Of a stretch of DNA of 64,000 bases, positions 12,611 through 59,774 are shown in pieces. Numbering within the stretch: the first letter of the stretch is position 1; the number at the start of each line of letters is the position of its first letter. The DNA lies in the IMG/VR virus record IMGVR_UViG_3300029258_002750, positions 211,102-275,101 of that record; one strand, 5' to 3'. The translations under genes and the position numbers were made by a program. The notes below the pieces were generated by a model, which was not told the DNA's origin, did no database searches, and saw only the letters and a program-made list of their open reading frames with translations.

Positions 12611-12804
12611 GCGAGCTGACGATGGCGAGGATGGAATACGCCAAGCGAGTTGCCCCATTCGTGTCAACGAGCTGGCTCGCAAAGACGATTCTCGATCTCA
12701 GCGAAGATGAATACCAGGCGCTCAGGCGCAAGGTGATCTACGAGACGCTCTACGAAGAGAGCGCAGTTGACCTGCTCGGCGCTCTCGCGGAGAGGAAGAG
12801 CTAG
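12607..12804 (+). CDS. Small hypothetical protein (65 aa) ending in the SAVDLLGALA motif
   Basis: ATGA overlap with the upstream gene; abuts the next ATG. Confidence 0.7.
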   Translation: MSELTMARMEYAKRVAPFVSTSWLAKTILDLSEDEYQALRRKVIYETLYEESAVDLLGALAERKS

Positions 12805-14208
12805 ATGGCGAAGGCGCTAGCGTTCAGGCGAGACACCAGCACGGTCGTCACGATCGACACCATCAACAACGTCGTGGCCGACGTTGGAATCGCGATTCCC
12901 GGAGCGCTCACGACGACGGTGTTTCCGGGGCGTACCAGGAACAACATCGCCGTCTACAACGGCGATCCCTACCTGCTCTACATCCACTCGTCAGGCGAGG
13001 CCCGTGTCGCGGTATACCAGAGCGGCTCGTGGTCCGACGTTCCATCGGCCGCTTTCCCTCCTGTGTCGGGAACCGTCGTTCCGATCAGCCTGGAGGTCGT
13101 CCAAGACTACCTCGTGATGAGCGTGTGGCGGCAGAACTCCGCCAGCGTGGATGGTCTGATCGTGAAGCGGACGGCCGATGGCTCGACGTGGGACGCGCCG
13201 GTGGCACTCGGCGCCCCTGTGCAGCCCACGGTCTCGGAGGGCTGCGCCTCGATCGCCTGGCGACAGGTCATGTGGTACGCCACGGCGAGCGGGATCGCCT
13301 ACTACAACCCGATCACCAACACGATGTCGGCCGCCTTCGATGACGGGGACGACGGCAACCTCGACGGTCCAGAGGTGCCCGTCGGCTCGTTCGCGTTCTG
13401 GAACAACAACCTCTACGTCCTGAAGCCTGGGACAGCCCTGTCCCTCTACCAGCTCGACACCGCGTGGCAGCCGACAGCGCCAACCGCCCCGCCCTCGTGG
13501 ACCAAGCTCTCGGCTACCGGCATCCCGAGCTTGGGATCGCTCACGATCGTACCGGACACGCCACCTGCGCTGCTCTTCGTCAACAGGGTCGATGAGTTGT
13601 GCATCCTCTACTCGGCCGCGCTTGGCTCGAAGCTCGTCAAGACGGACGCGGCGGCCTTCCCAGTCTTCGCCTTCACGGACGTGACGACCAGCCTGCTACC
13701 CTCGGCCATCCAGGGCATCTCGGACGGCGGCTTCACGCTCTACCAGGACGACCGGCGACGGGTCAACGAGGTTCAGAACATCCTGATTCACAGTAGCTCC
13801 ACCACCCAGCTGGCTACGTGGGATGGCGTGTCGGAGATCAACGTCCGAACGACATTCTCCCATCGGGTCATGCCGCCCGATGAGCGGTTTGGCGCGCTGC
13901 GGACGTTCACGAACCTCCAGCCGACGACTTCGATTACTGGCGTCGCGCAACCGTGGGACGGTCGCGTCGTGATCGACTACGACGTCAGAGATGCCAGTTC
14001 GCGGCCGGTGGACATCTTCGGCGAGTACTCGGTCGATGGCGACGAGTGGTCGCCGATGACCCAGGGCGACGGGGATGACGGCAACGAGCAGCTCGCGACA
14101 ACCCCGGCAGGCAGCAGCTACCAGTTCTACTGGGACGCCTGGGCCGACCTGACCGGCACGTACCCCAACATGAACATGCGGATCGTCTCCCGGATCTCCG
14201 GGGTCTAG
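12805..14208 (+). CDS. Putative virion protein: beta-propeller-like region plus C-terminal Ig-like domain
   Basis: Trp-rich beta repeats; C-terminal P..SITG...Y.F.WD domain resembles those of 39518 and 41080. Confidence 0.6.
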   Translation: MAKALAFRRDTSTVVTIDTINNVVADVGIAIPGALTTTVFPGRTRNNIAVYNGDPYLLYIHSSGEARVAVYQSGSWSDVPSAAFPPVSGTVVPISLEVVQDYLVMSVWRQNSASVDGLIVKRTADGSTWDAPVALGAPVQPTVSEGCASIAWRQVMWYATASGIAYYNPITNTMSAAFDDGDDGNLDGPEVPVGSFAFWNNNLYVLKPGTALSLYQLDTAWQPTAPTAPPSWTKLSATGIPSLGSLTIVPDTPPALLFVNRVDELCILYSAALGSKLVKTDAAAFPVFAFTDVTTSLLPSAIQGISDGGFTLYQDDRRRVNEVQNILIHSSSTTQLATWDGVSEINVRTTFSHRVMPPDERFGALRTFTNLQPTTSITGVAQPWDGRVVIDYDVRDASSRPVDIFGEYSVDGDEWSPMTQGDGDDGNEQLATTPAGSSYQFYWDAWADLTGTYPNMNMRIVSRISGV

Positions 14209-14280
14209 GAAGATAGAGGCACTCGGTCGGTGAATGGTGGTAAGTTCGCTCTCTGGCACGCTAGGTGAGGTGGAGAGCAA

Positions 14281-14550
14281 ATGCCGAAGATCGAACTGGA
14301 CGAGTTAGGAGAGGCCCACGTCAAGCTGCTCATGGAGACGAGAGGCAGGGCAGTGGCCGAGGCCGAGAGGAAGTTCAACGAGGGCCTGGAGATCGTGCTG
14401 CGAGCGAGCAACCACGAGTGGCCCGGCACAGACCTGGGTGTCCGCAAGAAGGAAGGCAAGATGCTCCTTGTGTGGGGGGATGAGCTGACCAAGGAGAAGG
14501 GGGCCATCGCGGCCAGCGGTGGTCCGCCGGAAGATACGCCGCCCTACTAG
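14281..14550 (+). CDS. Small helical hypothetical protein
   Basis: RBS GGAGAG, 89 aa, phage-like codon use. Confidence 0.7.
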   Translation: MPKIELDELGEAHVKLLMETRGRAVAEAERKFNEGLEIVLRASNHEWPGTDLGVRKKEGKMLLVWGDELTKEKGAIAASGGPPEDTPPY

Positions 14551-14560
14551 GAGGCGATGA

Positions 14561-15028
14561 ATGAGCACCCTGATTCGACAAGGCGACACGCTTCCGCTGT
14601 CGTTGCAGCTCCCGGACGGGGTCACCTCGAAGTACCCGCAGGCGGACATCTACTCGGTGGCCGGGGCACTCCTGACCACCGTGGACCTCGTCCACCGCGC
14701 CACCGGGCTCTACACGGTCGACACGGAGAACATGCCTGCCCAGGACTTCGTGACGGTCGTCTACACCGTCTACGATGACGCCGGTCACACGATCGTCTCT
14801 GCCACGTACGACCGGACGTCCGAGGTGTTCGTTCGGGCCGCGTTCATCGCGCTGGGCGACCTCGTGGACGGGACGGTCACCGTCCAGACAGCCCTGGCTC
14901 GCGCGAACGCGGCTGCGGCCGGGAAGGTCGTCAGAACGATGGGTAACCGTTACGAGTACCGCAATGACGCGGACACGGGCGCCCTGTTCACCAACATCGA
15001 CAACGACACGGAGCGGACCCCGGTGTGA
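14561..15028 (+). CDS. Hypothetical virion protein
   Basis: RBS GGAGG; beta-rich N-terminus; C-terminal TVQTALARANAAAAGK...ERT. Confidence 0.7.
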   Translation: MSTLIRQGDTLPLSLQLPDGVTSKYPQADIYSVAGALLTTVDLVHRATGLYTVDTENMPAQDFVTVVYTVYDDAGHTIVSATYDRTSEVFVRAAFIALGDLVDGTVTVQTALARANAAAAGKVVRTMGNRYEYRNDADTGALFTNIDNDTERTPV

Positions 15029-15300
15029 CGACGGTCAGGCGCGTCTACACTTTCGGATGGGATGGACCTCCGCCCTCAGGCGAGGAGGACGAGCCCACGT
15101 TCGTCTTTACCGGCGGCTGGTTCGGACAGTCGTACGACATTCCGCTCATCGAACCGCTGGATCCATCGATCGTGGCTCACGAGCAGAAGATCACCGGCCA
15201 GCTGACGACGTTCTTCGCACAGGGCACAGGCTCGACGATCAGTCCCGGCACCAGGGGCGTGGAGAGCGGAGACGCGAGGGTTGGTGAGGTGGTGCTGTAG
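15025..15300 (+). CDS. Hypothetical protein
   Basis: GTGA and TAGTG overlaps with both neighbours. Confidence 0.65.
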   Translation: MTTVRRVYTFGWDGPPPSGEEDEPTFVFTGGWFGQSYDIPLIEPLDPSIVAHEQKITGQLTTFFAQGTGSTISPGTRGVESGDARVGEVVL

Positions 15301-17495
15301 TGGCTGTCTTCCCGACGAGCACGATCAACAAGCAGAACGTGAAGTTCCGGTACGGGGAGCAGTACGTCTCGGAGGCCGCGAACCGGAAATTCCTCGCGAT
15401 CCCGAGAGGCGTCTACTACGGCTTCATCCCCACGTTCGAGAACGACGTGCTGACCCTCGCGCCGGACCCGACCTACGGAGTCTCTCAGGCTCGGCTCACG
15501 TCGTCCGACGATCCGCTGATCGCGCTCGATGTCGTGACCACTGAGTCGATCACGCTTGACTTCACCGGTCACTCGAGCTACCCGGTGAACGTGGTCCTCA
15601 AGGCCAACGGGGCGCTGGGGCTGGCGCACTCAGCCCAGGTCTTCACCAAGGTCGGGGCCGCGACTGATCCGACCGAGCTGCTGCTCGGCGAGGTCACGGC
15701 CGCGAACACGATCGACGTGACGCTGCCCGCCAAGAGGAGCAACCCCTACGCCTACGCCGGGGCGCCTCTCGGCTACGGCTTCATGCCCTCGGGGTCGGTC
15801 GAGGATCTCATCGCCGCCGTCTCCCTGGTGCAGGAGGTCGAGAACGCCAGAACCGATCTGACTGGCTTCACGCACCCGACCCTGCGTGAGCGGCTCGACG
15901 CCGACGCCACTGGTCCGGCCATCGCCGAGCGGCTGGGGAAAGAGCTGCGGACGATTGTCAGCGAGGACATCACGCTGCCGTCTGCGCCTACCGGCAGTAT
16001 CAACGTGAGCCGGTCGTTCTCGGCCCTCTACCGATCGTCCTCGCCTGTCGAGAACATCCCCGGGTTCGCCTCCGAGGACCGCAACGGTGCGATCACGGGT
16101 GGAACACTCCCAGTTCTGGTGCCGCCGGGTGCGCTGTCTGACTCGGAGCGCAACGTCTGCATGGTTATCGATACCTCGACCGAGCGCCGGATCCAGAACA
16201 CTGCCAAGGTGGCGGCCTACGGGCGGCTGACGCTCTCCGAGGTCGTGCTCACGGGCACGCTCACGTTCGTGGCCGCAAGCGATCGGGTCAGCGGAGCTGG
16301 AACCGACTTCCCGAACCAGGTAGAGGTTGGGGACATCGTCCAAGATACGGCCGATGACTACTACGAGGTGACCGCGATTCCCCAGACCGTGACAGGCGAG
16401 CTGCTCGCGACGATCGGCGGCTCACCCGCTCCGCACGATCTCTCGACGACTCCGCTCTCGAACCCAACGGCGATCATCCCCGGCTCCGTCTCGATCGACG
16501 TCGTGGTGGACGGTGTAGGGTCCGACGTCATCATCGACGACGGGGCCGGGAACCTCACGAGCGCCGCGCTGACCGCACCCGGGACGATCAATTACACGAC
16601 CGGGGCAATGACCGGAGTCACGGTCAACCTCCAGGCGGCCTCGCTGGTCCAGGCCAACTACACCACGGTGACCAACGAGATCCAGATCTCGACGCCAGCT
16701 GCCACCCCCGGCTCGTCGGCTACATTGCTGAGGCGGCGGTTCACTCTCTCCTTCTACGTTCGCACCGGCATCGGAGCCGAGTCCGGCCTGGCGCTCGACG
16801 GCGGCCCGACGCTTCGGTTCTTCTTCCCGCTCTGGGACACGATGGAGACGTCGCAGTTCGACTACCTGCCGTACCTCTTCAGGAACGCGGACGCCGAGCC
16901 GGTGATCGACGCGACGACCGTGATCTCAGGCCGCGCGCTGGTAGCCGCCAACGCGGGTGATGGGAAGGCCGGGGCCATCAACGAGATTCAGGACACGGGG
17001 AACCCGCTGCCGGACGGCTTCTACCACACGCTCAACTTCAACGGCGCATCCGATGGCGGGAGCGGCGTTGCCAACATCACGCAGCGAGGGCCGACCGGGC
17101 CAACAGGGCCAGACGCATCTGGCGGGCCGGTCGGACCAACTGGTCCGAAGGGCGATCAGGGACCCGGCTTCGAGCGATCGTCCGGCGACAACCCTGGAAC
17201 CTATCCGATCGTAGAGACATTCAACGTACCCCAGGGCTACTTTGGGTATACGCCAGGGACGACCTGGACCGACACGCACGACTTCAGTGCCACTCACAGC
17301 ATCTCGGAGATCTTGTTCGGAACGACGGGGCTCTCGAAGTGGAACCCGAACGACGACCATGGGGACGACCGCTGGCAGATCGAGCTGCTCGAGAAGATCT
17401 CGGCTACGACGTTGCGGGTGACCGGCTATGTGCCGCTCGGCAACCCGGATGTCGCCGGTATCCGATTCCTCTTCAACGCTGCGGGGCTTGACTGA
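15300..17495 (+). CDS. Tail fibre protein, paralog 1 of 3, with short collagen-like segment
   Basis: PRGVYYGFIP N-domain, GFMP, L.ERL.AD coil, HTLNF, GPTGPTGP...GPKGDQGP. Confidence 0.75.
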   Translation: MAVFPTSTINKQNVKFRYGEQYVSEAANRKFLAIPRGVYYGFIPTFENDVLTLAPDPTYGVSQARLTSSDDPLIALDVVTTESITLDFTGHSSYPVNVVLKANGALGLAHSAQVFTKVGAATDPTELLLGEVTAANTIDVTLPAKRSNPYAYAGAPLGYGFMPSGSVEDLIAAVSLVQEVENARTDLTGFTHPTLRERLDADATGPAIAERLGKELRTIVSEDITLPSAPTGSINVSRSFSALYRSSSPVENIPGFASEDRNGAITGGTLPVLVPPGALSDSERNVCMVIDTSTERRIQNTAKVAAYGRLTLSEVVLTGTLTFVAASDRVSGAGTDFPNQVEVGDIVQDTADDYYEVTAIPQTVTGELLATIGGSPAPHDLSTTPLSNPTAIIPGSVSIDVVVDGVGSDVIIDDGAGNLTSAALTAPGTINYTTGAMTGVTVNLQAASLVQANYTTVTNEIQISTPAATPGSSATLLRRRFTLSFYVRTGIGAESGLALDGGPTLRFFFPLWDTMETSQFDYLPYLFRNADAEPVIDATTVISGRALVAANAGDGKAGAINEIQDTGNPLPDGFYHTLNFNGASDGGSGVANITQRGPTGPTGPDASGGPVGPTGPKGDQGPGFERSSGDNPGTYPIVETFNVPQGYFGYTPGTTWTDTHDFSATHSISEILFGTTGLSKWNPNDDHGDDRWQIELLEKISATTLRVTGYVPLGNPDVAGIRFLFNAAGLD

Positions 17496-19477
17496 TGGCG
17501 ATCTACCCCGTCGAGTTCTTCACCCTGGGCAACGCGCTACTCAACTACTCCGACGAGTGGCAGTCGGCGCCGCTCGTTCAGAAGTTCGGGGGGATGCCGA
17601 AAGGCGTCTACGTCGGATTCACGCCAACCGTGGCCTCGCCGGTGCTCAACCTGGTGACCGACGCCGCCGAGGGCTTCTCGCTCCTCAAGACAGCATCTCA
17701 GGACGATCCGGGAGGACTGACAGTCGCTCTGGACTCGAACATCTCCCTGGACTTCACGGGTCAGCCTCCAGGCGACTTCCCGCTTCACGTGATCGCGCGA
17801 GCCTCGTACACAGCCGACGGGTCAGCGCCGACCTCGGCCGAGATCATCACCAGGTCAGCTGGACCAGTGGCCCACGACGAGGTGCTAGTCTGCATCGTGA
17901 CCGGGAACGCCGGGGCGATGACGATCTCCTACCGGCTTGTGCTGAACTTCGGCCACTCCCACACGGTCGAGCTGGACGCCAGCCTCAACGGCACTTCTTC
18001 GATCGACGACAGCCACTCCCACACGGTCGTCGCCGGGGTCGTGCAGATGGCGTCCGGCCACACGCACTCCCTGGATATGCTGCGGGATGCGCCGCTGGCC
18101 TACGACGGTGTCGACTTCGGCTTCATGCCCGCCGGATCTGTCGAAGACCTCGCGACGGCCGTCGAGATCGTCAACGAGATGGCCGCAGCTCGGATCGGGC
18201 TGGATTCGACCGTCTACGACACGCTCTCCGAACGACTCGCTGCCGACCAGAGCGCGCCCTCGATGGGCGGTCGGTTGGGTTTCATCCTCGCGGCGCTACG
18301 AAGCAACGACTACCTGGTCGAGTCGGGCGATACCTCGGTCAACGTCTCGGGATCGTTCTCCGAGGTCAACCGGCTCCACAAGCCCGAGATCACTCTCGAC
18401 GGCCAGGGCGCCGAGGGTGTGCGCGGGGCCGTCTCGTCGCCCAACGACGACGTACGCAACATCGCGGTGGTGCTTGACGCGGTGACCGGATACCGGCTCC
18501 TCGACGATGACGACACTCGGCGAGTGATCTTCGGCCGCGTGACCGGCCCAGAGGAATCCACGCTCACCGGGACCTACAACTTCCTGAACGCCCAGAAGGC
18601 CGTGTCGATCACGGACGGCCAGGCGGTCGGAGAGCTGGAGGTTGGGGACACGATCATGGGTGTTGACGGCCTCTACTATGAGGTCGGGACGATCTTCTCT
18701 GACGAGCTGATCGAGCTGGTCGACGAGTACCAGGGGCCAAACGCCGCGTCGGGCGGCCTGACGAAGCGGCGCTGGACGCTGGAGCTGAAGAAGATCTCGG
18801 GCACGCTCGAGATCGATGCCGAGGCTGATGCGGCGACCACCATCCGGTTCATCTTCCCCGCCTTTGTGCCGCTCGAGACAGGCATGGCCGATCAGCGGCT
18901 CATTCACCACATGCCGGGCGGTAAGCCGCCGCTGCCCGACGCGACTACGACGCAGCGAGGCCGCGTGCTCTTGTCTCAGTCTGGCGCGAAGCTGGGCGCG
19001 ATCAATATCCAAAACGCGGGTGCACCGCTGGTTGGCGGACCGTTCCACACGATCAACTTCCGTGACGGAGGCGGCCAGGTCATCGAGACCGGCGATGGTG
19101 AGGTCACAGTCGGCGAGATCGGACCGACTGGACCAACAGGCGACCCCGGCATCCCGGGAGCCCCAGGACCAACCGGGCCGGATGGTGTTGGATTCGACGA
19201 GATCAACGTCTGGGAACTCAGCGGGTGGTTGCCCAGCTCCGGCTACAACTCGGGTGGCCCGAACACCTACAGCTTCCAGACGGGGATGGGGCACACGATC
19301 AGGGCCTTGTGCGGCGGCATCGCCTCGTGGGATGACGATGGCGTCTTCGAGACCAGTACGCCGGACGAGATCGAGATCATCGACATCACCGGCGTAGGAA
19401 CAGGCACCGGCCGGATCGAGATCACCCTGCGCAACGACACGCGCGCGAAGCTCTTCTTGTCATCGGCGGGGTCGTAA
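17495..19477 (+). CDS. Tail fibre protein, paralog 2 of 3
   Basis: PKGVYVGFTP, GFMP, HTINF, Gly-X-Y run; extra HSH/HSH/HTH insert. Confidence 0.75.
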   Translation: MAIYPVEFFTLGNALLNYSDEWQSAPLVQKFGGMPKGVYVGFTPTVASPVLNLVTDAAEGFSLLKTASQDDPGGLTVALDSNISLDFTGQPPGDFPLHVIARASYTADGSAPTSAEIITRSAGPVAHDEVLVCIVTGNAGAMTISYRLVLNFGHSHTVELDASLNGTSSIDDSHSHTVVAGVVQMASGHTHSLDMLRDAPLAYDGVDFGFMPAGSVEDLATAVEIVNEMAAARIGLDSTVYDTLSERLAADQSAPSMGGRLGFILAALRSNDYLVESGDTSVNVSGSFSEVNRLHKPEITLDGQGAEGVRGAVSSPNDDVRNIAVVLDAVTGYRLLDDDDTRRVIFGRVTGPEESTLTGTYNFLNAQKAVSITDGQAVGELEVGDTIMGVDGLYYEVGTIFSDELIELVDEYQGPNAASGGLTKRRWTLELKKISGTLEIDAEADAATTIRFIFPAFVPLETGMADQRLIHHMPGGKPPLPDATTTQRGRVLLSQSGAKLGAINIQNAGAPLVGGPFHTINFRDGGGQVIETGDGEVTVGEIGPTGPTGDPGIPGAPGPTGPDGVGFDEINVWELSGWLPSSGYNSGGPNTYSFQTGMGHTIRALCGGIASWDDDGVFETSTPDEIEIIDITGVGTGTGRIEITLRNDTRAKLFLSSAGS

Positions 19478-21343
19478 ATGGCGAGCTTCCCTACATACGA
19501 CTTCACCGAAGAGTTCGTGAAGACTCGCTTCTTGGAGCCGTTCGCGGGTGATGCCATCAACGTGCGCGCGCTCGCCCTTCCGCGAGGTGTGTATCTGGGC
19601 TTCATCCCGCAGACGACGCCAGGCTCCGACATCCTGGTGCTGGCCACCGACCCGAACCACAACTTCTCCAAGCTGTCGGTCGGTTCCCAGACCAGGAAGA
19701 TGAACGTCGACCTCTTCACGGCCAACGATGTGGACCTGAACTTCAACGGACACACCGTGTTCCCGGTCTACGTGATCGCAAGGGCGGACTACCGAGACAA
19801 GATCGCGACCCAGGCCAAGATCCTGACGAGGGCGACGACCGCCTCCGGGCCACAGGAGGTGCTGATTTGCAAGGTGGACAAGGTCGGCGCTGACCTTACG
19901 GTCACGTACGACTTCCCGGACACGCGTCAGCCGCCGATCGCGTTCGACGGGCAAGTGGTCGGATTCATGCCTGACGACGCGATCACCGACCTGGAGATCG
20001 GCAACTCGACGCGGGCCGAGGTTACCGACGCGCGGCTGTCGGCGCACACGACGCCCGCGCCGCACCCGAGCCTGGCCGATCGTATCGAAGCCGATCTGGT
20101 CGGTCCGTCGATGGCCGACCGACTCGGCTACCGGCTCAGTCTCCTCGTCGGCAACCTGGTAACGGGGGTGGCCGGAACAGCGACGAATGTGTCCGGTTCG
20201 TTTGCGGCCACGAATCGCGAGTTCGCTCCTCTGATCGACGTCGTCCCCGGCGGAACAGAGACGGACGAGGGCGCGCTCACCGACCCTACCGACACGCTCC
20301 GCAACCTGTGTTTCGTCGTGGACGGAGGCACCGGCCAGCGGGTCGTCGACTCGACCAGCCGGGAGCCGATTTACGGCAGTCTCGTGTTCACGGAGTCGGC
20401 CCCCGGCTCCGACATCTCCGGCAACGTGTCCGGGACGATCAACTTCTACAACGGCACAACCACCGTCGATGGGACCGGCAACCCGTTCGCCTCCATCCAA
20501 GAGGGCGACCTGGTCAAGGCGACGAGTCCGCCTGGCGACGACAGGTGGTACGAGATCGCCGAGATCGACGACGCGAACAACGCCACGCTGGGAGCCGCCT
20601 TCCAAGGCGGGACGCCTGGAGGTCCGGCCATTCCCGTCGTCAATCCGCCGTTCCGTCGGTACACCCTGAACTTCTTCACCGTGTCGGGTGGTGCTCACTC
20701 GATGCCGGGTGGCAGCTCGATCAGGTTCCTCTTCCCGGCCTTCTACCGCGCCGACAGGTCGATCTTCGATGGGTGGCTGCTCCTCAAGCGGAACGGTGAG
20801 CTGCCGCCGGTGCCCGATGCGACCGAGTCCACGCCCGGCAAGGCGCTGCTCGCAGCCCCAGACGGCAAGGTGGGCTCGCTCAGATCGGTCGAGAACAACG
20901 GAACGCCGGTTGGCAACGACTACCACACGCTCAACTTCGTCTACGGCGGTGCCTCGGACGCTGGTCTGGGCGTGGCCGAGGTGTCGGTAATCGGCGCGAA
21001 GGGGCCGAAGGGGGCTGACTCGAACCCGGGTCCAACGGGGCCGCAGGGAGACCCCGGCTACGGCTTCACGAACTGCAACCCGTTCGAGAAGGATTCGTTG
21101 TGGGTCGGCCCTGGCCCGACGGTCTCGAAGTCGTTCACGGTCGATTTCAGCTCGGTGTCCCCGTCGATCTCTTCGATCCGACACGTCTGGGGCGGCCTCG
21201 CCGGATTGCGAGGGTTCAACCAGGGGAGAGAGATCAGAATCGACCACCTCAGCTTCTCCGGCTCGACGGGCCGGATCGACGGTCGCCTGATCGGCGCGGC
21301 CGAAAACATCTACTTCAAGCTATGGTTGGGGGCCTGCGAATGA
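19478..21343 (+). CDS. Tail fibre protein, paralog 3 of 3
   Basis: PRGVYLGFIP, GFMP, HTLNF, Gly-X-Y run. Confidence 0.75.
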   Translation: MASFPTYDFTEEFVKTRFLEPFAGDAINVRALALPRGVYLGFIPQTTPGSDILVLATDPNHNFSKLSVGSQTRKMNVDLFTANDVDLNFNGHTVFPVYVIARADYRDKIATQAKILTRATTASGPQEVLICKVDKVGADLTVTYDFPDTRQPPIAFDGQVVGFMPDDAITDLEIGNSTRAEVTDARLSAHTTPAPHPSLADRIEADLVGPSMADRLGYRLSLLVGNLVTGVAGTATNVSGSFAATNREFAPLIDVVPGGTETDEGALTDPTDTLRNLCFVVDGGTGQRVVDSTSREPIYGSLVFTESAPGSDISGNVSGTINFYNGTTTVDGTGNPFASIQEGDLVKATSPPGDDRWYEIAEIDDANNATLGAAFQGGTPGGPAIPVVNPPFRRYTLNFFTVSGGAHSMPGGSSIRFLFPAFYRADRSIFDGWLLLKRNGELPPVPDATESTPGKALLAAPDGKVGSLRSVENNGTPVGNDYHTLNFVYGGASDAGLGVAEVSVIGAKGPKGADSNPGPTGPQGDPGYGFTNCNPFEKDSLWVGPGPTVSKSFTVDFSSVSPSISSIRHVWGGLAGLRGFNQGREIRIDHLSFSGSTGRIDGRLIGAAENIYFKLWLGACE

Positions 21344-22841: not shown

Positions 22842-23225
22842 ATGGCAGAGTTCACGATCGAACAGGTGGAGCAGCACGCCAAGGACGTGCTCGAGGTGTT
22901 CGAGGACGGCTGGCAGTGGACCGATCTCTTCGAGATCGTCCCGAAGGTGATGGAGATCGTCGAGGCGGTCGAGGGCATGACCGGCGCAGAGAAGGCTGCG
23001 GCGGCCGAGCAGATCCTCGACTACGTGATCGATGAGACCGACATCCCGTGGCTGCCGGACAGCCTCATCGACCCGATCCTCAAGAAGGGGGTCCGCTACA
23101 TGATGCCCGTCATCTGCAAGGCGGCGAAGGGCGGCGAGGACGGCTACGCGATCAACAACGACGCGGTCACCAGGCTGGGCGACCTCGCCCGCGACCCGGA
23201 GACCGGGGGCGCGGCCGAAGGGTAG
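22842..23225 (+). CDS. Acidic helical hypothetical protein with DAVTRLGDLA motif
   Basis: RBS AGGA; DIPWLPD..IDPILK. Confidence 0.75.
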   Translation: MAEFTIEQVEQHAKDVLEVFEDGWQWTDLFEIVPKVMEIVEAVEGMTGAEKAAAAEQILDYVIDETDIPWLPDSLIDPILKKGVRYMMPVICKAAKGGEDGYAINNDAVTRLGDLARDPETGGAAEG

Positions 23226-25829: not shown

Positions 25830-28206
25830 CGTGACGACCATCATCGCGAAGAACCAGACCGCAGGCGACCTCGCGCTCACGCGCTTGGTTGCGCCCGATG
25901 CCAAGATCCCGGCGAGCGGCCAGGCCCAGCTGACCGACTGGAACGCGCCCTACGAGATCACGATCGACCCGGAGCTGGTCGCCTACATCAACGCCGACCA
26001 GGTGCTCCTGAACATCGACGGCGTGGACCTGACCAAGGCGGAGAGCCTGACGGCCGCCGAGCAGAAGGTCGCGGGCACGAACATCGGCAACCTGGTCGAG
26101 GTTGTGGATGTTGGCGGAAGTGTCGCCGGACTACCGGCGCTGGACGGCTCCTTGCTCACCAATCTGGCGGCCTCCGGCGCCTACCGGCTTCCCCCGAACC
26201 TCGTGCTGGTGGATCCAGCCCAGCCAGCCCTGGTCGGGGTTCGATACCAGACATGGGCCGCCGCCGACACCTACGTGGCAACGCAAACACCGTCCTCCAC
26301 GAACAGGTGGGGCATCCAGATCACCGGCACGAACAGCGAGAACATCGTCGTGCGCCCGTGGGTGGTCATCGTGGGGATGCCAGAAGGGTCCACGAGGCTC
26401 ACCGGCAACCTGACCTCGACGGTCAGCTTCAACGGCACAGGCGACCCCACCATCGGGCTCGTGCGCGAGTGCGAAGTCGCCAGTCTCGCTTTCTCGGCCG
26501 CGAACGAGTGGACCATCTTCCACAACTGCAAGCTGACGGGAGGAACTCCCACCGGAGGTTGGTGCCGACTCGACCATTGCCGCGTGGATGGCGGCAACTA
26601 CTTCAACATGGATCTGATGCAGATCTACCGCAGCATCGTCGATGGTTCCGGCGGCGGCTTCCCGGACGTGGTCCAGGCGCACTGGACCAGGTTCGCGTCG
26701 AACTACACCCTGCGGGGCGGCAACTTCAACTTCTGCGAGATCTTCATCGGCGGCACCACAACCTACCTGGCCGGGAGCTACACGCTCTGGAACTGCGTCA
26801 GCTACGCTGCGCTGAACGCGGCCAGCGCCGGGCATCGGATCAGGATTCTCAACACCATCCTGGTGGGAAACCCCACGATCACCCTCAACCCCGGTGACCT
26901 GACCACGCGCTCGGTCGTGGGGGACTTCGCCGTCTCTAACACAGGCGGCAACTGGACCAACGAGGGCGACTTCTACGACAACACGGCCTCCGGCCTCGCG
27001 GCGGATGAGGTCCAGGCGGCCATCGACGAGATCGTGGCCGGTCTGCCCACTGGCGATGTCGTCGGGCCGGGAAGCTCGACTACCAACAACGTGCCCCAGT
27101 TTGCGGACACGTCCGGCAAGCTCCTGAAGGATGGGCTGACGCCTGGCGGCGCAAATGGTCTGGCCACGCTCAACTCGGGCAGCAAGGTACCGCTGATCCA
27201 GCTCCCAGCTTCGCAGACGCCAGCTGTGGACACGATTCCCGTCTCTGGCTCGGTTCAGCCCACGATCAACCCAGGTTGGCTCCCGGGCGCGTCCGAGAGC
27301 GCGCAGGGCGCTATCGAGATCGCCACCCAGACCGAGACCGACACCGGCACGGACAATACGCGTGCTGTTACTCCGCTCAAGCTAGCTGGTCGAACGGCTA
27401 CAGAAACGCGCGCTGGTATTGCCGAGCTTGCGACTCAGGCCGAGACGGATACCGGTACAGACGATGCCAGGATCGTCACCCCGCTCAAGCTCAAGGGAAG
27501 GGTGCCGCGCACGGACTTCGGCGCATCGGCCAGTGACCCAGCCGGGTCTCCTGTTGACGGGGACATCTACTACAACACGGCGCTCGACAAGGAAATGCGA
27601 TACGACGCGACGAGAGCTAAGTGGCTTTCGGTTGCCGAGGCCGCCTACCAGTTCGGCCGCAACGGAGACACGCCTAGCGGCTCGTTCTATCGCGGTATCA
27701 ACGGGCTTGCGTTTTCTGCTACGCGGGGGCTGACTATGCCGCATGACGGAACAATTGTCGCCCTGGGCTATCACCGGGATGATTCAGATGCTGCAACCTT
27801 TGCGATTAGAAACAATACGACAGCAAGCGTCGTTGTGACAGTCGCCTCGACCGCTAACAAGGGAGTTGACTCGTCACTGAACGCTAACTTCTCGGCCCAG
27901 GACGTTCTCGCTCCCGGCAACAATACGGGCTCTAATACGACCTCCAATGTAATCGGCTGGTTCAAGGTCAAATGGAGGGTGTAGCGTATGACTACGATCA
28001 TCGCTAAGAATCAGACGGCCGGTGACCTGTTGCTGACATTGCTGTCAGTACCAGACACTGTGATTCCAGCCTCCGGCCAAGTCCAGTTGACGGATTGGAA
28101 CACAGTCACAGAAATTCAAAACGATCCCGAACTGCTTGCTTACATTAACAGCGATCAGGTGCTGCTGAACATCGACGGCGAGGACCAGACCAAGGCGCAG
28201 AGTCTT
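25353..28206 (+). repeat. Two diverged copies (about 25353-26049 and 27508-28206) of a unit spanning gene end, stop and next gene start
   Basis: YYNTALD.EMRYDATRAKW...W.KV.WR* then TTIIAKNQTAGDL...IPASGQ.QLTDWN...DQVLLNIDG in both copies. Confidence 0.85.
25831..27984 (+). CDS. Tail fibre/spike: module Y, beta-helix-like region, fibre repeats, module X
   Basis: Starts TTIIAKNQTAGDL; two ATQ.ETDTGTD..R.VTPLKL repeats; ends KVKWRV. Confidence 0.8.
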   Translation: MTTIIAKNQTAGDLALTRLVAPDAKIPASGQAQLTDWNAPYEITIDPELVAYINADQVLLNIDGVDLTKAESLTAAEQKVAGTNIGNLVEVVDVGGSVAGLPALDGSLLTNLAASGAYRLPPNLVLVDPAQPALVGVRYQTWAAADTYVATQTPSSTNRWGIQITGTNSENIVVRPWVVIVGMPEGSTRLTGNLTSTVSFNGTGDPTIGLVRECEVASLAFSAANEWTIFHNCKLTGGTPTGGWCRLDHCRVDGGNYFNMDLMQIYRSIVDGSGGGFPDVVQAHWTRFASNYTLRGGNFNFCEIFIGGTTTYLAGSYTLWNCVSYAALNAASAGHRIRILNTILVGNPTITLNPGDLTTRSVVGDFAVSNTGGNWTNEGDFYDNTASGLAADEVQAAIDEIVAGLPTGDVVGPGSSTTNNVPQFADTSGKLLKDGLTPGGANGLATLNSGSKVPLIQLPASQTPAVDTIPVSGSVQPTINPGWLPGASESAQGAIEIATQTETDTGTDNTRAVTPLKLAGRTATETRAGIAELATQAETDTGTDDARIVTPLKLKGRVPRTDFGASASDPAGSPVDGDIYYNTALDKEMRYDATRAKWLSVAEAAYQFGRNGDTPSGSFYRGINGLAFSATRGLTMPHDGTIVALGYHRDDSDAATFAIRNNTTASVVVTVASTANKGVDSSLNANFSAQDVLAPGNNTGSNTTSNVIGWFKVKWRV

Positions 28207-40978: not shown

Positions 40979-40989
40979 AAGCGACCGTA

Positions 40990-41076
40990 ATGGGGCGGAA
41001 GATCACTCTTACTGGTGGAGTCAAAATGCACGCCACGGATCAGGGAACACCGGACAGGGCTAGGATCGAGGAGTAG
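40990..41076 (+). pseudogene. Internally deleted remnant of the half-Hint-like gene (28 aa)
   Basis: MGRKITLTGGVKMHATDQ...IEE matches KLTLEGGAEMTASDQ...VEE of 39166. Confidence 0.6.
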
Positions 41077-41079
41077 ACG

Positions 41080-42552: not shown

Positions 42553-42555
42553 GTT

Positions 42556-45413: not shown

Positions 45414-45414
45414 C

Positions 45415-45888: not shown

Positions 45889-45891
45889 ATC

Positions 45892-47586: not shown

Positions 47587-47590
47587 GACG

Positions 47591-48757: not shown

Positions 48758-48765
48758 GAGCTAAC

Positions 48766-49575: not shown

Positions 49576-49584
49576 GAGATTACC

Positions 49585-50019
49585 GTGAGCAACTACGCAA
49601 TAGTCCGTGATTCAGACGGCCTGATCGAGAACATCACGGTGTGGGATGGCGTGACCCCGTGGACTCCTCCGGCCGGAACTACGGCTGTCGAGTACACCGA
49701 CGAGGCTCGGATCGACGGCTGGTACAGCGACCCAGACTGGAATGGTCCGACGCCAGCTATCGACTCTATCGATCCGGCAACCGGGGGGACAGCGGGCGGC
49801 GACACGGTTACGATCCAGGGCTACAACCTCGACCTGGACGACGTCGAGGTGAAGTTCGACGGAGTCGCCGCCACAAACATCCAGAACCAGACCAAGACAA
49901 GCCTTCAGTGCGACACTCCGGCTCACGCCGCCGGAGCGGTCGACGTCACCATCGAGAACGGTGAGGGATCTTGGACCGGCAGGAGTACGCTGACTGACGG
50001 GTTCGAGTACGCCGCGTAG
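49585..50019 (+). CDS. IPT/TIG-domain protein with fibre-chaperone-like N-terminus
   Basis: YAIV....IENITVWDG; P.I.SI.P..G.TAGG..VTI.G.N ...C.TPAH.AG.VDV. Confidence 0.8.
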   Translation: MSNYAIVRDSDGLIENITVWDGVTPWTPPAGTTAVEYTDEARIDGWYSDPDWNGPTPAIDSIDPATGGTAGGDTVTIQGYNLDLDDVEVKFDGVAATNIQNQTKTSLQCDTPAHAAGAVDVTIENGEGSWTGRSTLTDGFEYAA

Positions 50020-50028
50020 GAGAGTCAC

Positions 50029-51222: not shown

Positions 51223-51269
51223 GGCAGCTTCGTCGATAGTCAGAATAGAATCAGCTTCAGGAGAGAGAC

Positions 51270-53683: not shown

Positions 53684-54247
53684 CTACAAATCGCCGGGCT
53701 CGACCATCTGCCCCTGCTCGCGCTTGAGGCGGCGGATGGTCGCGCGGCGGCTGTTGACCTTCTTGCGCCACCGCTGTGCGAACCGCTCGGCGTGCTCGAG
53801 CTTGGCCTCCCACTCGGCGAGCTTGGCCTGCTCGGCCGCGAGCTTCTTCTGGTGGTACTCGATTCCCGTGGGACGCTCCTGCTTCGGCTCCTGCCGCTTG
53901 AAGCGCACGCTGCGGCCGACCGCCCAGTCGGGAAGCTCGTCGAACCACGTCTGGCTACCGTAGACGAACCAGGCGATGATCGAGCACACGTCGAGGAACG
54001 CCCCGGGCGGCATCGTAGGCTCGTCAGCGCTGACCCCGGCCAACGCGTCGATCGCGTTGTCGTGCAGACGCTCGGGTCGCATCAGCTTGAGCGTGTTCCG
54101 AACTCCGGCCGCCGCTTGTCTGCGCAGTGGCGCGTGAACCACGGTGATGGTCCGGTTCCCGAGCGTGATTCCGCGCTCTCGGGCGCAGGCGAGCAGGAGA
54201 CCTCGGATGTCGCGGCCGTTGTAGCGCGTCTCGTTCTTGAGTTTCAC
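53684..54247 (-). CDS. Hypothetical protein with C-terminal coiled coil (paralog of 54244)
   Basis: MKLKNETRYNGRDIR; RPERL..NAIDALAGV...MP. Confidence 0.75.
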   Translation of the reverse strand: MKLKNETRYNGRDIRGLLLACARERGITLGNRTITVVHAPLRRQAAAGVRNTLKLMRPERLHDNAIDALAGVSADEPTMPPGAFLDVCSIIAWFVYGSQTWFDELPDWAVGRSVRFKRQEPKQERPTGIEYHQKKLAAEQAKLAEWEAKLEHAERFAQRWRKKVNSRRATIRRLKREQGQMVEPGDL

Positions 54248-54825
54248 GACGGATTCTCCTGCGCGGCGAGCTTCGCCCTGATCGCGTCGATCTTTCGCTG
54301 CTGGAGGCCGACCTCGGACCGCCAGCTCGCGTTGATCCGGTCCATCTCCTTCTCGGCGGCCTCGAGCTGCCGACGGAGCCAGGCGGGCGACCGTCGGTGC
54401 CTGGTGCGCGATGCCCGGACCTGGATCTCGTCCAGCTCGGGCGGCGGCGGTTTGTCCTTGGCTGCCCAGCTGGTCCAGCCGTCCTGGTAGGACCGGCCGC
54501 GCACCAGCGCGAGTCCGCCCAGGAAGACGTGCTCGACCATCTCGCGCGGCATCCGACCGAGCGCCCCGTCCATGACGCTCGCGAGCGCGTCCACGACCTC
54601 CAGGTCCACCCGGCCGGGCCGACGGAGACGGAGGATGGCCGATCGCGTGTTGGGGTCGAAGCTGGCCGAGACGAGCCCCGACCGGGCCGTGTAGTGGCGG
54701 GCCACGATCGGGGTGTCCACGCGGACGCCGACCTTCTCTCCCTTGTCGTTGACCACCGAGAGCGCCAGGTCCATGACCCGGCGCAGATCCTCGGTGTTCC
54801 AGCTCGTCAAGTTCTCGAAGATCAA
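54244..54825 (-). CDS. Hypothetical protein (paralog of 53684)
   Basis: TTG start: MIFENLTSWNTEDLR; RPGRV..EVVDALASV...MP; C-terminal coil. Confidence 0.7.
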   Translation of the reverse strand: MIFENLTSWNTEDLRRVMDLALSVVNDKGEKVGVRVDTPIVARHYTARSGLVSASFDPNTRSAILRLRRPGRVDLEVVDALASVMDGALGRMPREMVEHVFLGGLALVRGRSYQDGWTSWAAKDKPPPPELDEIQVRASRTRHRRSPAWLRRQLEAAEKEMDRINASWRSEVGLQQRKIDAIRAKLAAQENPS

Positions 54826-55626: not shown

Positions 55627-56499
55627 TCACGCCGTGTCCTTCTTGGGCGTGCGCAGGTCGTCGAGCGTGAGCAGCTCGGCGATCTCGCCGTTCTCGACCT
55701 TGACGCGCGCCTTCAGCCACTCGTAGACCTCAGCGGCCGTCATCTTGGAGAGCTTCACGGCGGTCGCGAGCAGGACAGCGGTCGGGTCTTCCTCGGGCTC
55801 CTCGGCGGGCGCGGCAGCCTCGAACTGCTTCGTGAGCACCTTCTCTACGGCTCCGGCCACGTCGAGCCCCTCGGGCTCCTTGACCGTCTCCTTCTTGGCG
55901 GGCGCGGGCTCGCCCTCGACGGGCGAGAGCGCGGCGAGCTTCTCGACCACGCTGGGCGAGACCTTCTTCATCGCGATCCCCATCATCTTCGCGCAGTCGG
56001 GGCCGAAGCCGGTCGCGATCGAGCTGGGAACGGTCAGGGCCGCGCAGCAGCGCGCGCAGAAGCCCCGATGCCAGAACTTGATCTTGTGGGAGGCTTCGAC
56101 ACCATCCACGAGCCACTTGGTCGTATCGCCGATCAGGTTGATGTTCTCGGCAGTCGCGGCGGCCTTCTTGGTGCCCTTCGTGGTGCGGAACCGGCGGACG
56201 CCGTGCACGTCGTCGATCACGCCGATGTAGGAGTAGCGCCGCCCGTCGCCCGAGCCGTGCAACACGTGGACGAACCAGCGGTCCTTCTCGACCTCCTTGA
56301 CGGTGCCGTCCGGCTGCTTCTCGTCGTCCGTGGCGCGAGAAACGAAGTAGGTGTGCCGCTTGGTGGTCGCGACGTCAACGAGCGTCACGACGGCCCGCCC
56401 AGCGAGCAGGTAGTCGAGGCACAGGTGCCAGGGCACCTGAATGCCGTCCGAGAGATCCTTCTTTGCGAGCGTCTTCTTGCTGACCTTCTTGAGTCCCAC
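55627..56499 (-). CDS. DUF6011-like zinc-finger protein
   Basis: WHRGFCARCCAALTVPSSIATGFGPDCA; LAGRAVVTL....RHTY. Confidence 0.8.
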   Translation of the reverse strand: MGLKKVSKKTLAKKDLSDGIQVPWHLCLDYLLAGRAVVTLVDVATTKRHTYFVSRATDDEKQPDGTVKEVEKDRWFVHVLHGSGDGRRYSYIGVIDDVHGVRRFRTTKGTKKAAATAENINLIGDTTKWLVDGVEASHKIKFWHRGFCARCCAALTVPSSIATGFGPDCAKMMGIAMKKVSPSVVEKLAALSPVEGEPAPAKKETVKEPEGLDVAGAVEKVLTKQFEAAAPAEEPEEDPTAVLLATAVKLSKMTAAEVYEWLKARVKVENGEIAELLTLDDLRTPKKDTA

Positions 56500-58560: not shown

Positions 58561-58757
58561 GGCAGTGGACGCTCGTGGGACCGATGGAGCGCGTCTTCAA
58601 GCATCTGCCCGAGAAACAACGCCTCCTGGTGTTGTGGGGAGCCGGGATCGCCGACACGGCCACAGTCCAGAAGGAGGTTCCCGCGTTCGCAGAGGCGTTT
58701 AGGAGGGTCTTCAGGGAGCTGGAGGAAGAGAGCAGGAGCACGTGGACCAAGAGCTGA
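58557..58757 (+). CDS. Hypothetical protein
   Basis: GTGA overlap with the upstream gene. Confidence 0.55.
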   Translation: MRQWTLVGPMERVFKHLPEKQRLLVLWGAGIADTATVQKEVPAFAEAFRRVFRELEEESRSTWTKS

Positions 58758-59104
58758 TCAGGCAAATCAAGCAAGGCGCCAAGTGGATGCCAGGCTTCAA
58801 GATCAAGCCGATCCCGCCGCGCCTCTCGGTACTCGCTCGCTTCATCGAGGAGACCTGGCCCGATCTGAGGGTGACCCTTCGGCCCTGGACCACGAACACC
58901 GACACGAAGATCGGTCGGCTCCGGTGGCCCGGCAAGGGACGGAAGGGCAAGCTGCTGGAGGTTCGCGATCCCCAACTCGGCCGTGATGGCCTATGCGATC
59001 GTGGCCTGATCCTGCGCCACGAATCGGGCGACGCCTACCGCCACAACGGCGACGTCTGCCAGTGGATCGTCAAGCGGCTGGAAGAGGACGAGAAGTGCGG
59101 CTGA
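58742..59104 (+). CDS. Hypothetical basic protein
   Basis: GTG after AGGAG. Confidence 0.65.
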   Translation: MDQELIRQIKQGAKWMPGFKIKPIPPRLSVLARFIEETWPDLRVTLRPWTTNTDTKIGRLRWPGKGRKGKLLEVRDPQLGRDGLCDRGLILRHESGDAYRHNGDVCQWIVKRLEEDEKCG

Positions 59105-59127
59105 GGTTAGTTGACCGAGGAGGTCCC

Positions 59128-59367
59128 GTGAGCGAACGTGCGCTCCGTTGGCGATGTAAGCGGTGCGGAAGCGAGGGGCCGGTCAACCCGGATCCGGGCA
59201 AGCTGCACGGCGAGCTGGCCTACGTCGGGATCGGCCCAGGCAGCAAACTAGTCCACACGAGTTTCCCGCCTCCCTACGGCTTGCCGCCGGTCTGCGGCGA
59301 GGTGGAGATCACAAGCCAACCAGACGATGCGATCACCCGACTGAGCCGGTTGGCGGAGGAGACATGA
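59128..59367 (+). CDS. Small CxxC protein ending in the DAITRLSRLA motif
   Basis: GTG after GGAGG; WRCKRC...H...C. Confidence 0.7.
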   Translation: MSERALRWRCKRCGSEGPVNPDPGKLHGELAYVGIGPGSKLVHTSFPPPYGLPPVCGEVEITSQPDDAITRLSRLAEET

Positions 59368-59774
59368 TCGAACGCGAGACAGTCAGAGATTCGACAGAGT
59401 CCTTCATCTTGCTGCGATTCGTTCGTACGAGCAAGAACGGGAAGCGCGAGATCAAGTGGGCCTCATCGACCGAGATCGGCTATCGATGGAAGGATGGGCG
59501 CCGAGTCACCAACCGATCGTGGTTCACGCTCGACGATCGTGATGTCAGTCGAGAGCGCATGAAGGGGCCGACGCGGTTCGAGGACGTGGCCTGGGCCAGG
59601 CGGTTCTCCAAGATCGTTCGCGAATTCAAGGATCTGATCGCTGGCGGCTGGGAGGCCGAGGTCGTCGAGGTCACCGACAAACGGCTGCACACCAGGGAGA
59701 TCAAGCCGCGCTGGCCAGCTGACGCGGTCGAAGCGCTGGCCGATCTCGGCCGGGATGTGGCAGACGCTGGGTAG
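59364..59774 (+). CDS. Hypothetical protein ending in the DAVEALADLG motif
   Basis: ATGA overlap, RBS GGAGGAG. Confidence 0.7.
   Translation: MIERETVRDSTESFILLRFVRTSKNGKREIKWASSTEIGYRWKDGRRVTNRSWFTLDDRDVSRERMKGPTRFEDVAWARRFSKIVREFKDLIAGGWEAEVVEVTDKRLHTREIKPRWPADAVEALADLGRDVADAG

Follow-up and report, generated by a model that had tools for sequence, protein, structure and literature searches.

A ten-residue, predicted helical motif (roughly Ser-Ala-Val-Asp-x-Leu-Gly/Ala-x-Leu-Ala) recurs far beyond chance on at least 30 otherwise unrelated proteins of an uncultured 275-kb T4-like jumbo phage known only from metagenome contigs. It often lies at the very C-terminus (13 of 30 copies) and looks like a shared docking or address tag, a function inferred from sequence and predicted structure alone.

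Results

The motif in the window

The window, i.e., the whole analysed stretch of 64,000 nucleotides from IMG/VR record IMGVR_UViG_3300029258_002750, had been described in a preliminary description as containing seven instances of the pattern [DNSE]-[AV]-[VI]-[DTE]-x-L-[AGS]-x-[LV]-[ASGM]. This observation was confirmed: all seven peptides translate exactly as given there, at the same coordinates and strands, and lie in genes of our gene model for which the public gene calls give the same lengths. The instances, with their scores in the profile described below (best control score 10.7), and two weaker matches are:

12760..12789 (+), SAVDLLGALA, 4 residues from the C-terminus of the 65-aa protein 12607-12804, inside the baseplate gene module; score 27.9. 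The orthologue in the related sequences L006/L007 is 46% identical overall but keeps SAIDLLGALSE.
23160..23189 (+), DAVTRLGDLA, 11 residues from the C-terminus of the 127-aa protein 22842-23225, upstream of a CIS-tube-like gene; score 29.9. The orthologue keeps AVTKLGDLARDPETGGAAE, and the same DAVTRLGDL string recurs in an unrelated 89-aa protein about 26 kb beyond the window end.
54029..54058 (-), NAIDALAGVS, internal (residues 64-73) in the 187-aa protein 53684-54247; score 26.8.
54571..54600 (-), EVVDALASVM, internal (residues 76-85) in the 193-aa protein 54244-54825; score 19.7. The orthologue in the relative L003 has EAVDALASIA.
55924..55953 (-), SVVEKLAALS, directly after the DUF6011 zinc finger of the 290-aa protein 55627-56499 and followed by a Pro/Glu-rich linker; score 24.8.
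59326..59355 (+), DAITRLSRLA, 3 residues from the C-terminus of the 79-aa Cys-rich protein 59128-59367; score 22.2. No orthologue was found in L003.
59721..59750 (+), DAVEALADLG, 7 residues from the C-terminus of the 136-aa protein 59364-59774; score 32.4. The last 21 residues are identical in a 60%-identical orthologue, and a 28-33%-identical paralogue ends in DVISALAEVG.
60927..60956 (+), KAIDALVSTG, a weak look-alike inside the DNA methyltransferase 60531-62249, matching 6 of 8 fixed positions; it was not among the profile hits above the control threshold and is not counted as a carrier.
26098..26127 (+), EVVDVGGSVA, a marginal match in the 717-aa tail-fibre-like protein 25831-27984, with 7 of 8 positions but without the near-invariant Leu; its score of 11.5 is just above the control maximum, and it is probably due to chance.

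The pattern hit only the seven instances among the 66 proteins of the window, whereas the reversed pattern hit none and residue shuffles gave 0.02. Proteins 53684-54247 and 54244-54825 are paralogues (32% identity over 84 aa, E 7e-5) with the motif at the same position; the other carriers showed no similarity once the motif was masked. The characterization of all seven carriers as non-structural is unproven for 12607-12804, given its position inside the baseplate module, and for 22842-23225, located just before a tube-like gene.

Taken alone, however, the seven instances prove nothing, as the pattern was fitted after the fact. In a seed-based test the seven seeds ranked 584-7619 of 16,616. A greedy search gave an equally good six-member motif for the median arbitrary 10-mer, and the information content of the set (150.4 bits) equals the median greedy motif in the real proteome (149.5) and in shuffled proteomes (about 149).

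Replication in independent sequence

We then applied the unchanged pattern to 90 unseen proteins (19,181 aa) from a further 69 kb of the same genome. There were 4 exact hits against 0.011 expected (P = 6e-10) and 14 hits at 7 or more of the 8 fixed positions, compared to 0.51 in shuffles, 0.62 under a first-order Markov model and 1 for the reversed pattern. In contrast, 113,011 aa from 47 unrelated high-GC viral contigs gave 0 exact and 3 near hits, with 3.9 expected from shuffles (Fisher P = 8e-10 for the phage proteins against these), which does not fit a generic helix N-cap or amphipathic-helix grammar.

A profile with its threshold set above the best control score identified 30 carriers among the 156 proteins examined, from about half of the genome, with scores of 19.7-36 against a control maximum of 10.7. 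The true set comprises at least 30 proteins rather than seven. They include 21 of the 63 proteins of 160 aa or fewer, and DNA polymerase A adds one more. Thirteen of the 30 copies lie within 11 residues of the C-terminus, against 3.3 expected (P < 5e-6), and only 1 lies within 11 residues of an N-terminus. Leu6 is present in 29 of 31 and Gly or Ala at position 7 in 30 of 31.

Selection acts on the protein, not on the DNA: codons differ, synonymous-codon identity between copies was 759 observed against 759.5 expected, and RNAalifold found no consensus structure. The motif is retained in orthologues, often better than the rest of the protein. A relative with 80% MCP identity carries it on three small proteins that have no counterpart in the 143 kb examined here.

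Relation to the fold of the carriers

Motif-masked all-against-all BLASTP found no homology among carriers (no pair at E <= 0.05), which have plainly different architectures: SNase fold, HNH, DUF6011 finger, polymerase A, Gly-rich, Cys-rich and all-helical. Where it could be assessed, the motif was not an integral part of the fold. In the SNase-like protein it lies in a 13-19-residue loop insertion that is present in sequences P0033 and P0035-39 but absent from the 69%-identical orthologue P0034, from P0040-48 and from staphylococcal nuclease; in the AlphaFold model it is a helix at pLDDT 58 within a core at about 90-95. In the AlphaFold model of 59364-59774, core residues 11-107 have pLDDT of about 80, whereas the tail 108-136 has pLDDT 30-37, with a short helix at 120-126. 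Protein 55627-56499 matches DUF6011 (PF19474) at residues 144-173 with 39.9 bits, above the gathering score of 26.6; the motif starts 10 residues after the domain and is not part of the model. In the family alignment, the segment xx[IV]EKLAAL is kept down to about 42% identity and forms the C-terminus of the short homologues, but it is absent from homologues at 36% identity or less. Some internal copies may nevertheless be ordinary parts of their folds, namely those of the 53684/54244 pair and of the DnaB-like 234-aa protein, whose alignment to the helicase profile shows no insertion.

Discussion

We consider it more likely than not that the motif is a portable short linear docking element, a helix of 10-14 residues with consensus (E/P)-P-[S/D]-A-[V/I]-[D/E]-x-L-[G/A]-[D/E/A]-[L/V/I]-[A/V/G]-R-D-[D/E]. 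Read from the profile, position 1 (Ser or Asp) and position 4 (Asp or Glu) would form a helix N-cap and capping box, Ala2, Val/Ile3, Leu6, Leu9 and position 10 would make one hydrophobic face, the small residue at position 7 suggests tight packing against a partner, and the flanks are Pro, Gly or charged coil. In this view, the element was added independently to the C-terminal ends or surface loops of at least 30 otherwise unrelated proteins, i.e., a third of the small orphan proteins of this phage, but also an SNase-like nuclease, an HNH endonuclease, the DUF6011 protein, DNA polymerase A and, in variant form, the portal. Our analysis establishes the reality of the motif, its clade-specific enrichment, protein-level selection, portability and C-terminal bias, whereas binding, the existence of a single partner, the identity of that partner and any routing of carriers into the prohead or virion are inferred. 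The interpretation in the preliminary description, a common address label for one partner such as the capsid, a compartment, a protease or a host complex, is partly supported.

As the common receptor we tentatively favor the prohead scaffolding core, although this remains a candidate that is less likely than not; the tag would then load a varied set of proteins into the head for co-injection. The head module is T4-type (gp23, T4 portal and an S77 protease), the portal carries a variant of the motif, and two carriers contain portal-like or MCP-like fragments. On the other hand, the tag is C-terminal or internal, no consistent Leu/Ile-x-Glu protease site adjoins it, DNA polymerase A and a helicase-like ATPase are unlikely cargo, and a third of all small proteins would be an unusually large cargo set. 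A replication or DNA-associated hub, such as the phage's own beta-clamp, is a still less likely second candidate. In the broadest reading, which is possible but less likely than not, this phage clade would run a proteome-wide address-tag system, in which one helix grafted onto C-termini and loops routes several dozen unrelated, mostly fast-evolving orphan proteins (about a fifth of the proteome) to a single receptor. This might be the prohead core, so that a large and changeable arsenal is packaged and co-injected, or some other phage-built assembly, and new cargo would be recruited simply by acquiring the tag.

Among the alternatives, cryptic common descent survives best, although we consider it unlikely. 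Here the motif would be the only recognisable remnant of one small ancestral module spread by duplication, fusion and recombination within the genome, so that the recurrence would reflect ancestry rather than repeated selection for a shared partner; this could coexist with a docking function. Many carriers are small genes in tandem arrays, for example six adjacent genes at about 88.5-90.8 kb and three at about 83.5-84.4 kb in window-relative coordinates, the 53684/54244 pair are true paralogues, SGVDQLAELA and SAVDQLAELV share 22 identical nucleotides including the rare GTT and GAT codons, and DAVTRLGDL recurs identically in two proteins. However, the lack of similarity among masked carriers, their different architectures and the synonymous-codon sharing exactly at expectation argue against it, and the SNase case is a clean indel inside a loop rather than a domain fusion.

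Similarly unlikely is an autonomous structural element without a common receptor: a capped amphipathic helix might stabilise or solubilise small proteins, mediate self-association or association between carriers (condensate or factory formation), or simply be the locally favoured way of ending a protein in this lineage. The textbook capping features, the single hydrophobic face, the predicted helix in both models and a small residue at position 7 that would suit helix-helix packing are compatible with this. Yet unrelated high-GC viral proteomes show no such enrichment, generic stabilisation would not require near-invariant Leu6, Gly/Ala7 and Ala2/Val3 across unrelated folds, and close SNase homologues fold without the motif.

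Less likely again is a substrate mark for a phage enzyme, such as a protease that trims tails, a degron for timed turnover or a modification site. The exposed C-terminal location, the alternation of Ser with Asp/Glu at position 1 and the acidic position 4 would fit, and the phage encodes a T4-type prohead protease, a tmRNA with the tag ANAPVRLAA, an ADP-ribosylglycohydrolase and kinase-like proteins. However, there is no match to the Leu/Ile-x-Glu specificity of the T4 protease, no fixed P1 residue exists, as position 4 is Asp, Glu, Thr or Ser and position 8 is Asp, Glu, Ala or Ser, and ten constrained positions with a helical periodicity are more typical of a binding helix than of a cleavage site.

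A nucleic-acid element that happens to be translated in one frame (a repeated DNA site, recombination boundary, promoter, terminator or RNA hairpin near gene ends) is largely refuted. Many copies lie just upstream of the next gene's start, residues after C-terminal copies overlap Shine-Dalgarno-like GAGG/GGAG strings, for example at 59356-59367, and windows encoding the motif fold slightly better than random coding windows (-15.8 against -13.8 kcal/mol, P = 0.017). Synonymous positions vary freely, however, without a consensus RNA structure, and all copies are in the same reading frame relative to the peptide, many of them internal to genes. Finally, a chance or compositional artefact of an Ala/Leu/Val/Asp-rich high-GC proteome, which the statistics of the window alone would have allowed, is refuted by the replication in unseen proteins (P about 1e-9 against composition, Markov and real-protein controls), the C-terminal bias and the conservation in orthologues.

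Comparison with known systems

The analogy to the T4 capsid-targeting sequence (CTS) of the internal proteins IPI, IPII, IPIII and Alt, drawn in the preliminary description, holds in concept. There, a short conserved peptide is the only thing shared by a diverse, fast-evolving set of small proteins and serves as an address to the prohead scaffolding core (PMC3012670), and the phage studied here has the same head-assembly gene set and likewise bears the motif on otherwise unrelated small proteins. The T4 CTS comprises about 10 residues at the N-terminus and is removed at a Leu/Ile-x-Glu protease site. In contrast, the motif described here has a different sequence, is C-terminal or internal, is flanked by Glu-Pro before and Arg-Asp-Asp/Glu after it without an adjacent protease consensus, and sits on about 20% of proteins, including polymerase A.

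Encapsulin cargo-loading peptides are short, mostly C-terminal peptides appended through flexible linkers to unrelated cargo enzymes, and they dock on the inner face of an HK97-fold shell. Their consensus (hydrophobic-x-Ile/Val-Gly-Ser-Leu-Lys/Arg) differs from the S-A-V-D-x-L-[GA]-x-L-[AV] found here, many copies here are internal, and in the 143 kb examined, about half of the genome, no encapsulin gene was found, the only HK97-type shell gene being gp23-like.

Hub-binding linear motifs of replication proteins (beta-clamp QL[SD]LF or QLxLxL, the PCNA PIP-box, and the T4 gp45-binding C-terminal tails of gp43, gp33 and gp55) also lie at termini or in loops of many unrelated proteins that all dock in one pocket of one hub. 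The phage encodes its own beta-clamp, and polymerase A (with an internal copy), nucleases and a helicase-like ATPase are among the carriers, while the replicative 500-aa DnaB, the primase and the loader lack the motif, with profile scores of 4.4 or less. The sequence lacks the Gln and the Leu-x-Leu-Phe spacing, with hydrophobic residues at positions 3, 6 and 9, and its presence on a third of small orphan proteins, a portal variant and tail-module proteins is not expected of clamp clients. Finally, in-frame repeated insertions such as Rickettsia palindromic elements also place a recurrent peptide segment into surface loops of unrelated proteins without destroying their folds, but those are DNA repeats recognisable at the nucleotide level, whereas here there is no nucleotide conservation beyond codon usage.

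Genomic context

The 64-kb window has a GC content of 64% and is the last part of IMG/VR contig UViG_3300029258_002750 (275,101 bp); the same genome is also represented by JGI contig Ga0180432_10000008 (275,080 bp). It belongs to an uncultured T4-like jumbo myovirus without close GenBank phage, as a megablast search with 24 kb of the window against GenBank phages returned no match. The window encodes tape measure, baseplate hub/wedge and gp25-like genes and many tail-fiber paralogs, followed by non-structural genes for an ADP-ribosylglycohydrolase, a metallophosphatase, a DNA methyltransferase and an intein-bearing deoxynucleoside kinase. Just outside lie genes for the gp23 capsid protein, T4-type portal, S77 prohead protease, sheath, gp19 tube and gp13. 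Our gene model of the window contains 66 proteins (20,449 aa) and agrees with the public gene calls for every motif carrier. Further features of this genome are listed below; L013, L017, L074 and L097 denote retrieved segments of the same genome.

Window 15300-21343, 24984-28950 and 33028-52385: large paralogous families of tail-fiber-like proteins with three, three and six members, plus three pairs, including collagen-like GPTGPxGDPG triplets (17495-21343) and long poly-Gly tracts (47591-51222); a Gly-rich 85-aa motif carrier outside the window resembles these.
Window 62293-63999 (runs off the window end): deoxynucleoside kinase gene interrupted by an intein (Hint plus LAGLIDADG homing-endonuclease domains); inteins also sit in the prohead protease gene (L017:7155-9986) and in DNA polymerase A (L097:18926 onwards).
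L074:7148-17301 (about 13-23 kb beyond the right end of the window): array of about 35 tRNA genes and a tmRNA with the tag peptide ANAPVRLAA, next to a Ro60/TROVE-vWA gene (L074:4810-6486); this array explains the long stretches without called genes.
Window-relative 65816-68223 (L013:16453-18860) and L097:14343-16996: two MoxR-type AAA+/vWA-like gene pairs (AAA_5 with DUF2201, and CbbQ-like with CobT-like); the phage also encodes a Cpn10 co-chaperonin and its own beta sliding clamp.
L097:11730-13232, 15365-16996 and 17069-17854: replication-module proteins ending in an acidic stretch plus a terminal Phe (…EEGIVF, …QNLRF, …DSGAISF), which resembles SSB-type C-terminal tails and may be a second, separate terminal motif.

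Recurrence of the motif within and beyond the window

All seven ten-residue peptides of the preliminary description are present exactly as described, and its observation is therefore confirmed. The regular expression given there hits only those seven in the window, whereas the reversed expression hits none and residue shuffles give 0.02. The four C-terminal copies lie 4, 11, 3 and 7 residues from the end. The proteins starting at 53684 and 54244 are paralogs with the motif at the same place, while the other carriers are unrelated once the motif is masked.

However, the expression was written from the seven hits, which makes a comparison of 7 against 0.02 circular. In a seed-based BLOSUM test that takes the look-elsewhere effect into account, the seven seeds ranked 584-7619 of 16,616. 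In a greedy seed-and-refine search for six independent sites, the set scored 150.4 bits, compared with a median over all seeds of 149.5 in the real proteome and about 149 in shuffled proteomes, and 43-46% of arbitrary seeds did as well. These tests have little power at six sites, but they remain a true statement about the window, from which alone we would have called the motif chance.

This was overturned by replication in unseen sequence. We walked along the same genome in both directions by searching for further contigs (segments L008, L012, L013, L016, L017 and L074-L076, later L097) and merged 133 kb, later 143 kb. Among 90 proteins (19,181 aa) that had not entered the preliminary description, the unchanged expression gave four exact hits, SAVDLLGELG, SAVEKLAEVA, SAIDQLADLA and SAVDRLAALA, against an expectation of 0.011 (P = 6e-10). 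It gave 14 hits at 7 or more of 8 fixed positions, compared with 0.51 in shuffles, 0.62 under a first-order Markov model and 1 for the reversed pattern. Because the reversed pattern and residue shuffles are insufficient as the only nulls, we added the first-order Markov model and a control of real proteins, for which 56 random high-GC viral loci were retrieved through an arbitrary 18-mer and the 47 with at least 58% GC were used. Their 113,011 aa gave 0 exact and 3 near hits, equal to their own shuffle expectation of 3.9 (Fisher P = 8e-10). Therefore, the motif is real and specific to this genome and is not a by-product of composition, dipeptide bias or ordinary helix grammar. Methodologically, the window alone could not distinguish the motif from chance, whereas replicating a pre-specified pattern in unseen parts of the same genome could.

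Extent and anatomy

An 18-column profile was iterated with its threshold set above the best control score (10.7). It identified 30 carriers scoring 19.7-36 among 156 proteins, including 21 of the 63 proteins of 160 aa or fewer, and DNA polymerase A added one more; the set is thus much larger than initially reported. The consensus is (E/P)-P-S-A-V-D-R-L-[G/A]-[D/E]-L-[A/V]-R-D-[D/E]. Position 1 is Ser in 18 and Asp in 7 copies, position 2 is Ala in 23, position 3 is Val in 22 and Ile in 8, position 4 is Asp in 18 and Glu in 7, position 6 is Leu in 29 of 31, position 7 is Gly in 16 and Ala in 14, and position 9 is Leu, Val or Ile. This reads as an N-capped amphipathic helix of about three turns (Ser/Asp ... 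Asp/Glu capping box), with an obligatory small residue in its center and coil on both sides.

Thirteen of the 30 copies lie within 11 residues of the C-terminus, against 3.3 expected (P < 5e-6), and one lies near an N-terminus. Large structural proteins (fibers, baseplate, sheath, capsid) lack the motif, as had been noted initially for baseplate and fiber proteins. However, the carriers 12607-12804 and 22842-23225, which had been counted among non-structural proteins, sit in tail or baseplate modules, and the portal carries a variant (EIMDKLGQLT) that is conserved in a relative. Pfam and PHROG scans of the carriers and of the two genes between portal and protease yielded nothing beyond DUF6011 and a DnaB-like hit. 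A search of the ESM Atlas with the tail of 59364-59774 gave only sub-threshold hits, and the T4 late-promoter word TATAAATA, sought to time the carriers, is absent from the 133 kb and thus provides no timing information.

Conservation at the protein level

Serine is encoded by AGC, TCG, TCT or AGT, and the codons for Ala, Val and Leu vary as well. Over 1,837 aligned identical residues, codon identity is 759 against 759.5 expected from codon usage, by which a DNA repeat was rejected. RNAalifold found no shared structure, and the coding windows are only marginally more stable than random coding windows, so that an RNA hairpin was rejected, too. One pair (SGVDQLAELA and SAVDQLAELV) shares 22 nucleotides, including rare codons, and may be a recent copy. 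The few residues after C-terminal copies at window positions 59356-59367 and 12790-12804 (EET*, ERKS*) are encoded by GAGGAG/GAGAGG strings, which double as ribosome-binding sites for the overlapping or abutting next gene; this partly explains the acidic residues after the motif.

Portability among unrelated proteins

With the motif masked, carriers show no mutual similarity, and their sequences are visibly of different kinds: Cys-rich, Gly-rich, all-helical and beta-rich. In the SNase-like nuclease, the alignment to staphylococcal nuclease breaks exactly around the motif. In a 15-member family alignment, the motif lies in a 13-19-residue loop segment that is present in members P0033 and P0035-39 but cleanly absent from the 69%-identical ortholog of the 159-kb relative, from P0040-41 and from all distant members. 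The AlphaFold model (mean pLDDT 83.6) shows a helix at 118-127 with pLDDT about 58, protruding between core elements at about 90-95. For 59364-59774, the model has a confident core at residues 11-107 and a low-confidence tail (pLDDT 30-37) containing only the short motif helix, yet the last 21 residues are identical in a 60%-identical ortholog and recognizable in a 28-33% paralog. In the DUF6011 family, the segment follows the zinc finger, is conserved down to about 42% identity, is the C-terminus of the short homologs, and is missing from homologs at 36% identity or less.

It had been proposed beforehand that the idea of a tag would fail if the helix were an integral part of each fold; this was not the case in the proteins examined, which leave out some internal copies, namely those of the 53684/54244 pair and of the DnaB-like protein, whose profile alignment shows no insertion. 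For polymerase A, an alignment to PDB structures did not reach the region of its copy.

Distribution among relatives

Orthologs in the 159-kb relative keep the motif. A relative at 80% capsid-protein identity has three more carriers with no counterpart in the 143 kb examined here. Syntenic but distant relatives (L095, L096) have fewer and more divergent copies, such as DPIDRLGDLVA at a C-terminus, NVIERLANVG and PDVVAHLAQLAPS, and relatives at 69% capsid identity show none in the head region. The motif system is therefore a clade feature, expanded in the closest lineage. In L096, a ribosomal protein L7/L12 homolog is encoded (L096:1-390) next to the DUF2201 gene; no counterpart of this L7/L12 homolog was seen in the 143 kb of the genome studied here.

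Interpretation and comparison with known systems

A short helix that is exposed, conserved, positionally biased and grafted onto dozens of unrelated scaffolds is, with moderate confidence, best explained as a docking motif for a common partner. The suggestion of a common tag is partly supported in its structural and evolutionary predictions, whereas its functional core, the binding to a shared partner, is our inference, as is any identity proposed for this partner.

For the partner, we tentatively favor the prohead core, since the head module is T4-like, the portal carries a variant, and two carriers contain fragments similar to head proteins. The 135-aa carrier at L097:3132-3539 contains a 64-residue stretch that is 44% identical to residues 67-126 of the gp23-like capsid protein (E 2.5e-9), and the 65-aa carrier 12607-12804 resembles portal residues 425-464 (E 6e-5); these are small genes built from fragments of head proteins plus the motif. 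However, the C-terminal or internal position, the lack of a protease site, and carriers such as polymerase A argue against this assignment. A replication hub is the next candidate, as the phage encodes a beta-clamp, DnaB, primase and polymerase A, but the motif does not resemble clamp-binding consensus sequences and the core replisome proteins lack it. Cryptic common descent, an autonomous or self-associating helix, and a processing or degradation mark are the remaining alternatives, whereas chance and a nucleic-acid element are effectively excluded.

If the motif is an address tag, it assigns a shared destination or partner to dozens of unknown proteins at once and gives a simple handle, by peptide pull-down or tag swapping onto reporters, for finding that partner. 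It would also suggest how jumbo phages recruit new accessory proteins into an existing machine, and it may provide a portable tag for loading cargo into T4-like particles.

Literature searches for a phage-wide motif returned nothing relevant, and we found no published description of the one reported here. Several resemblances were considered and dropped, namely the ribosomal L10 helix segments that bind L12, the FliM/CheZ peptides that bind CheY, dockerin helices, PEP-CTERM and the first helix of helix-turn-helix motifs, because they match at most 6 of 8 positions, a level common in controls, or because their defining features are absent. We place the motif among short targeting or docking peptides, with a substantial chance that it represents a proteome-wide address system without close precedent in phages. 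Short linear docking motifs are central to the biology of eukaryotes and their viruses but are barely catalogued in phages, and the few known examples, such as the T4 capsid-targeting sequence and clamp-binding tails, involve a handful of proteins, whereas here one motif marks about 20% of the proteins examined in a 275-kb phage, most of them orphan proteins with no other clue to function.
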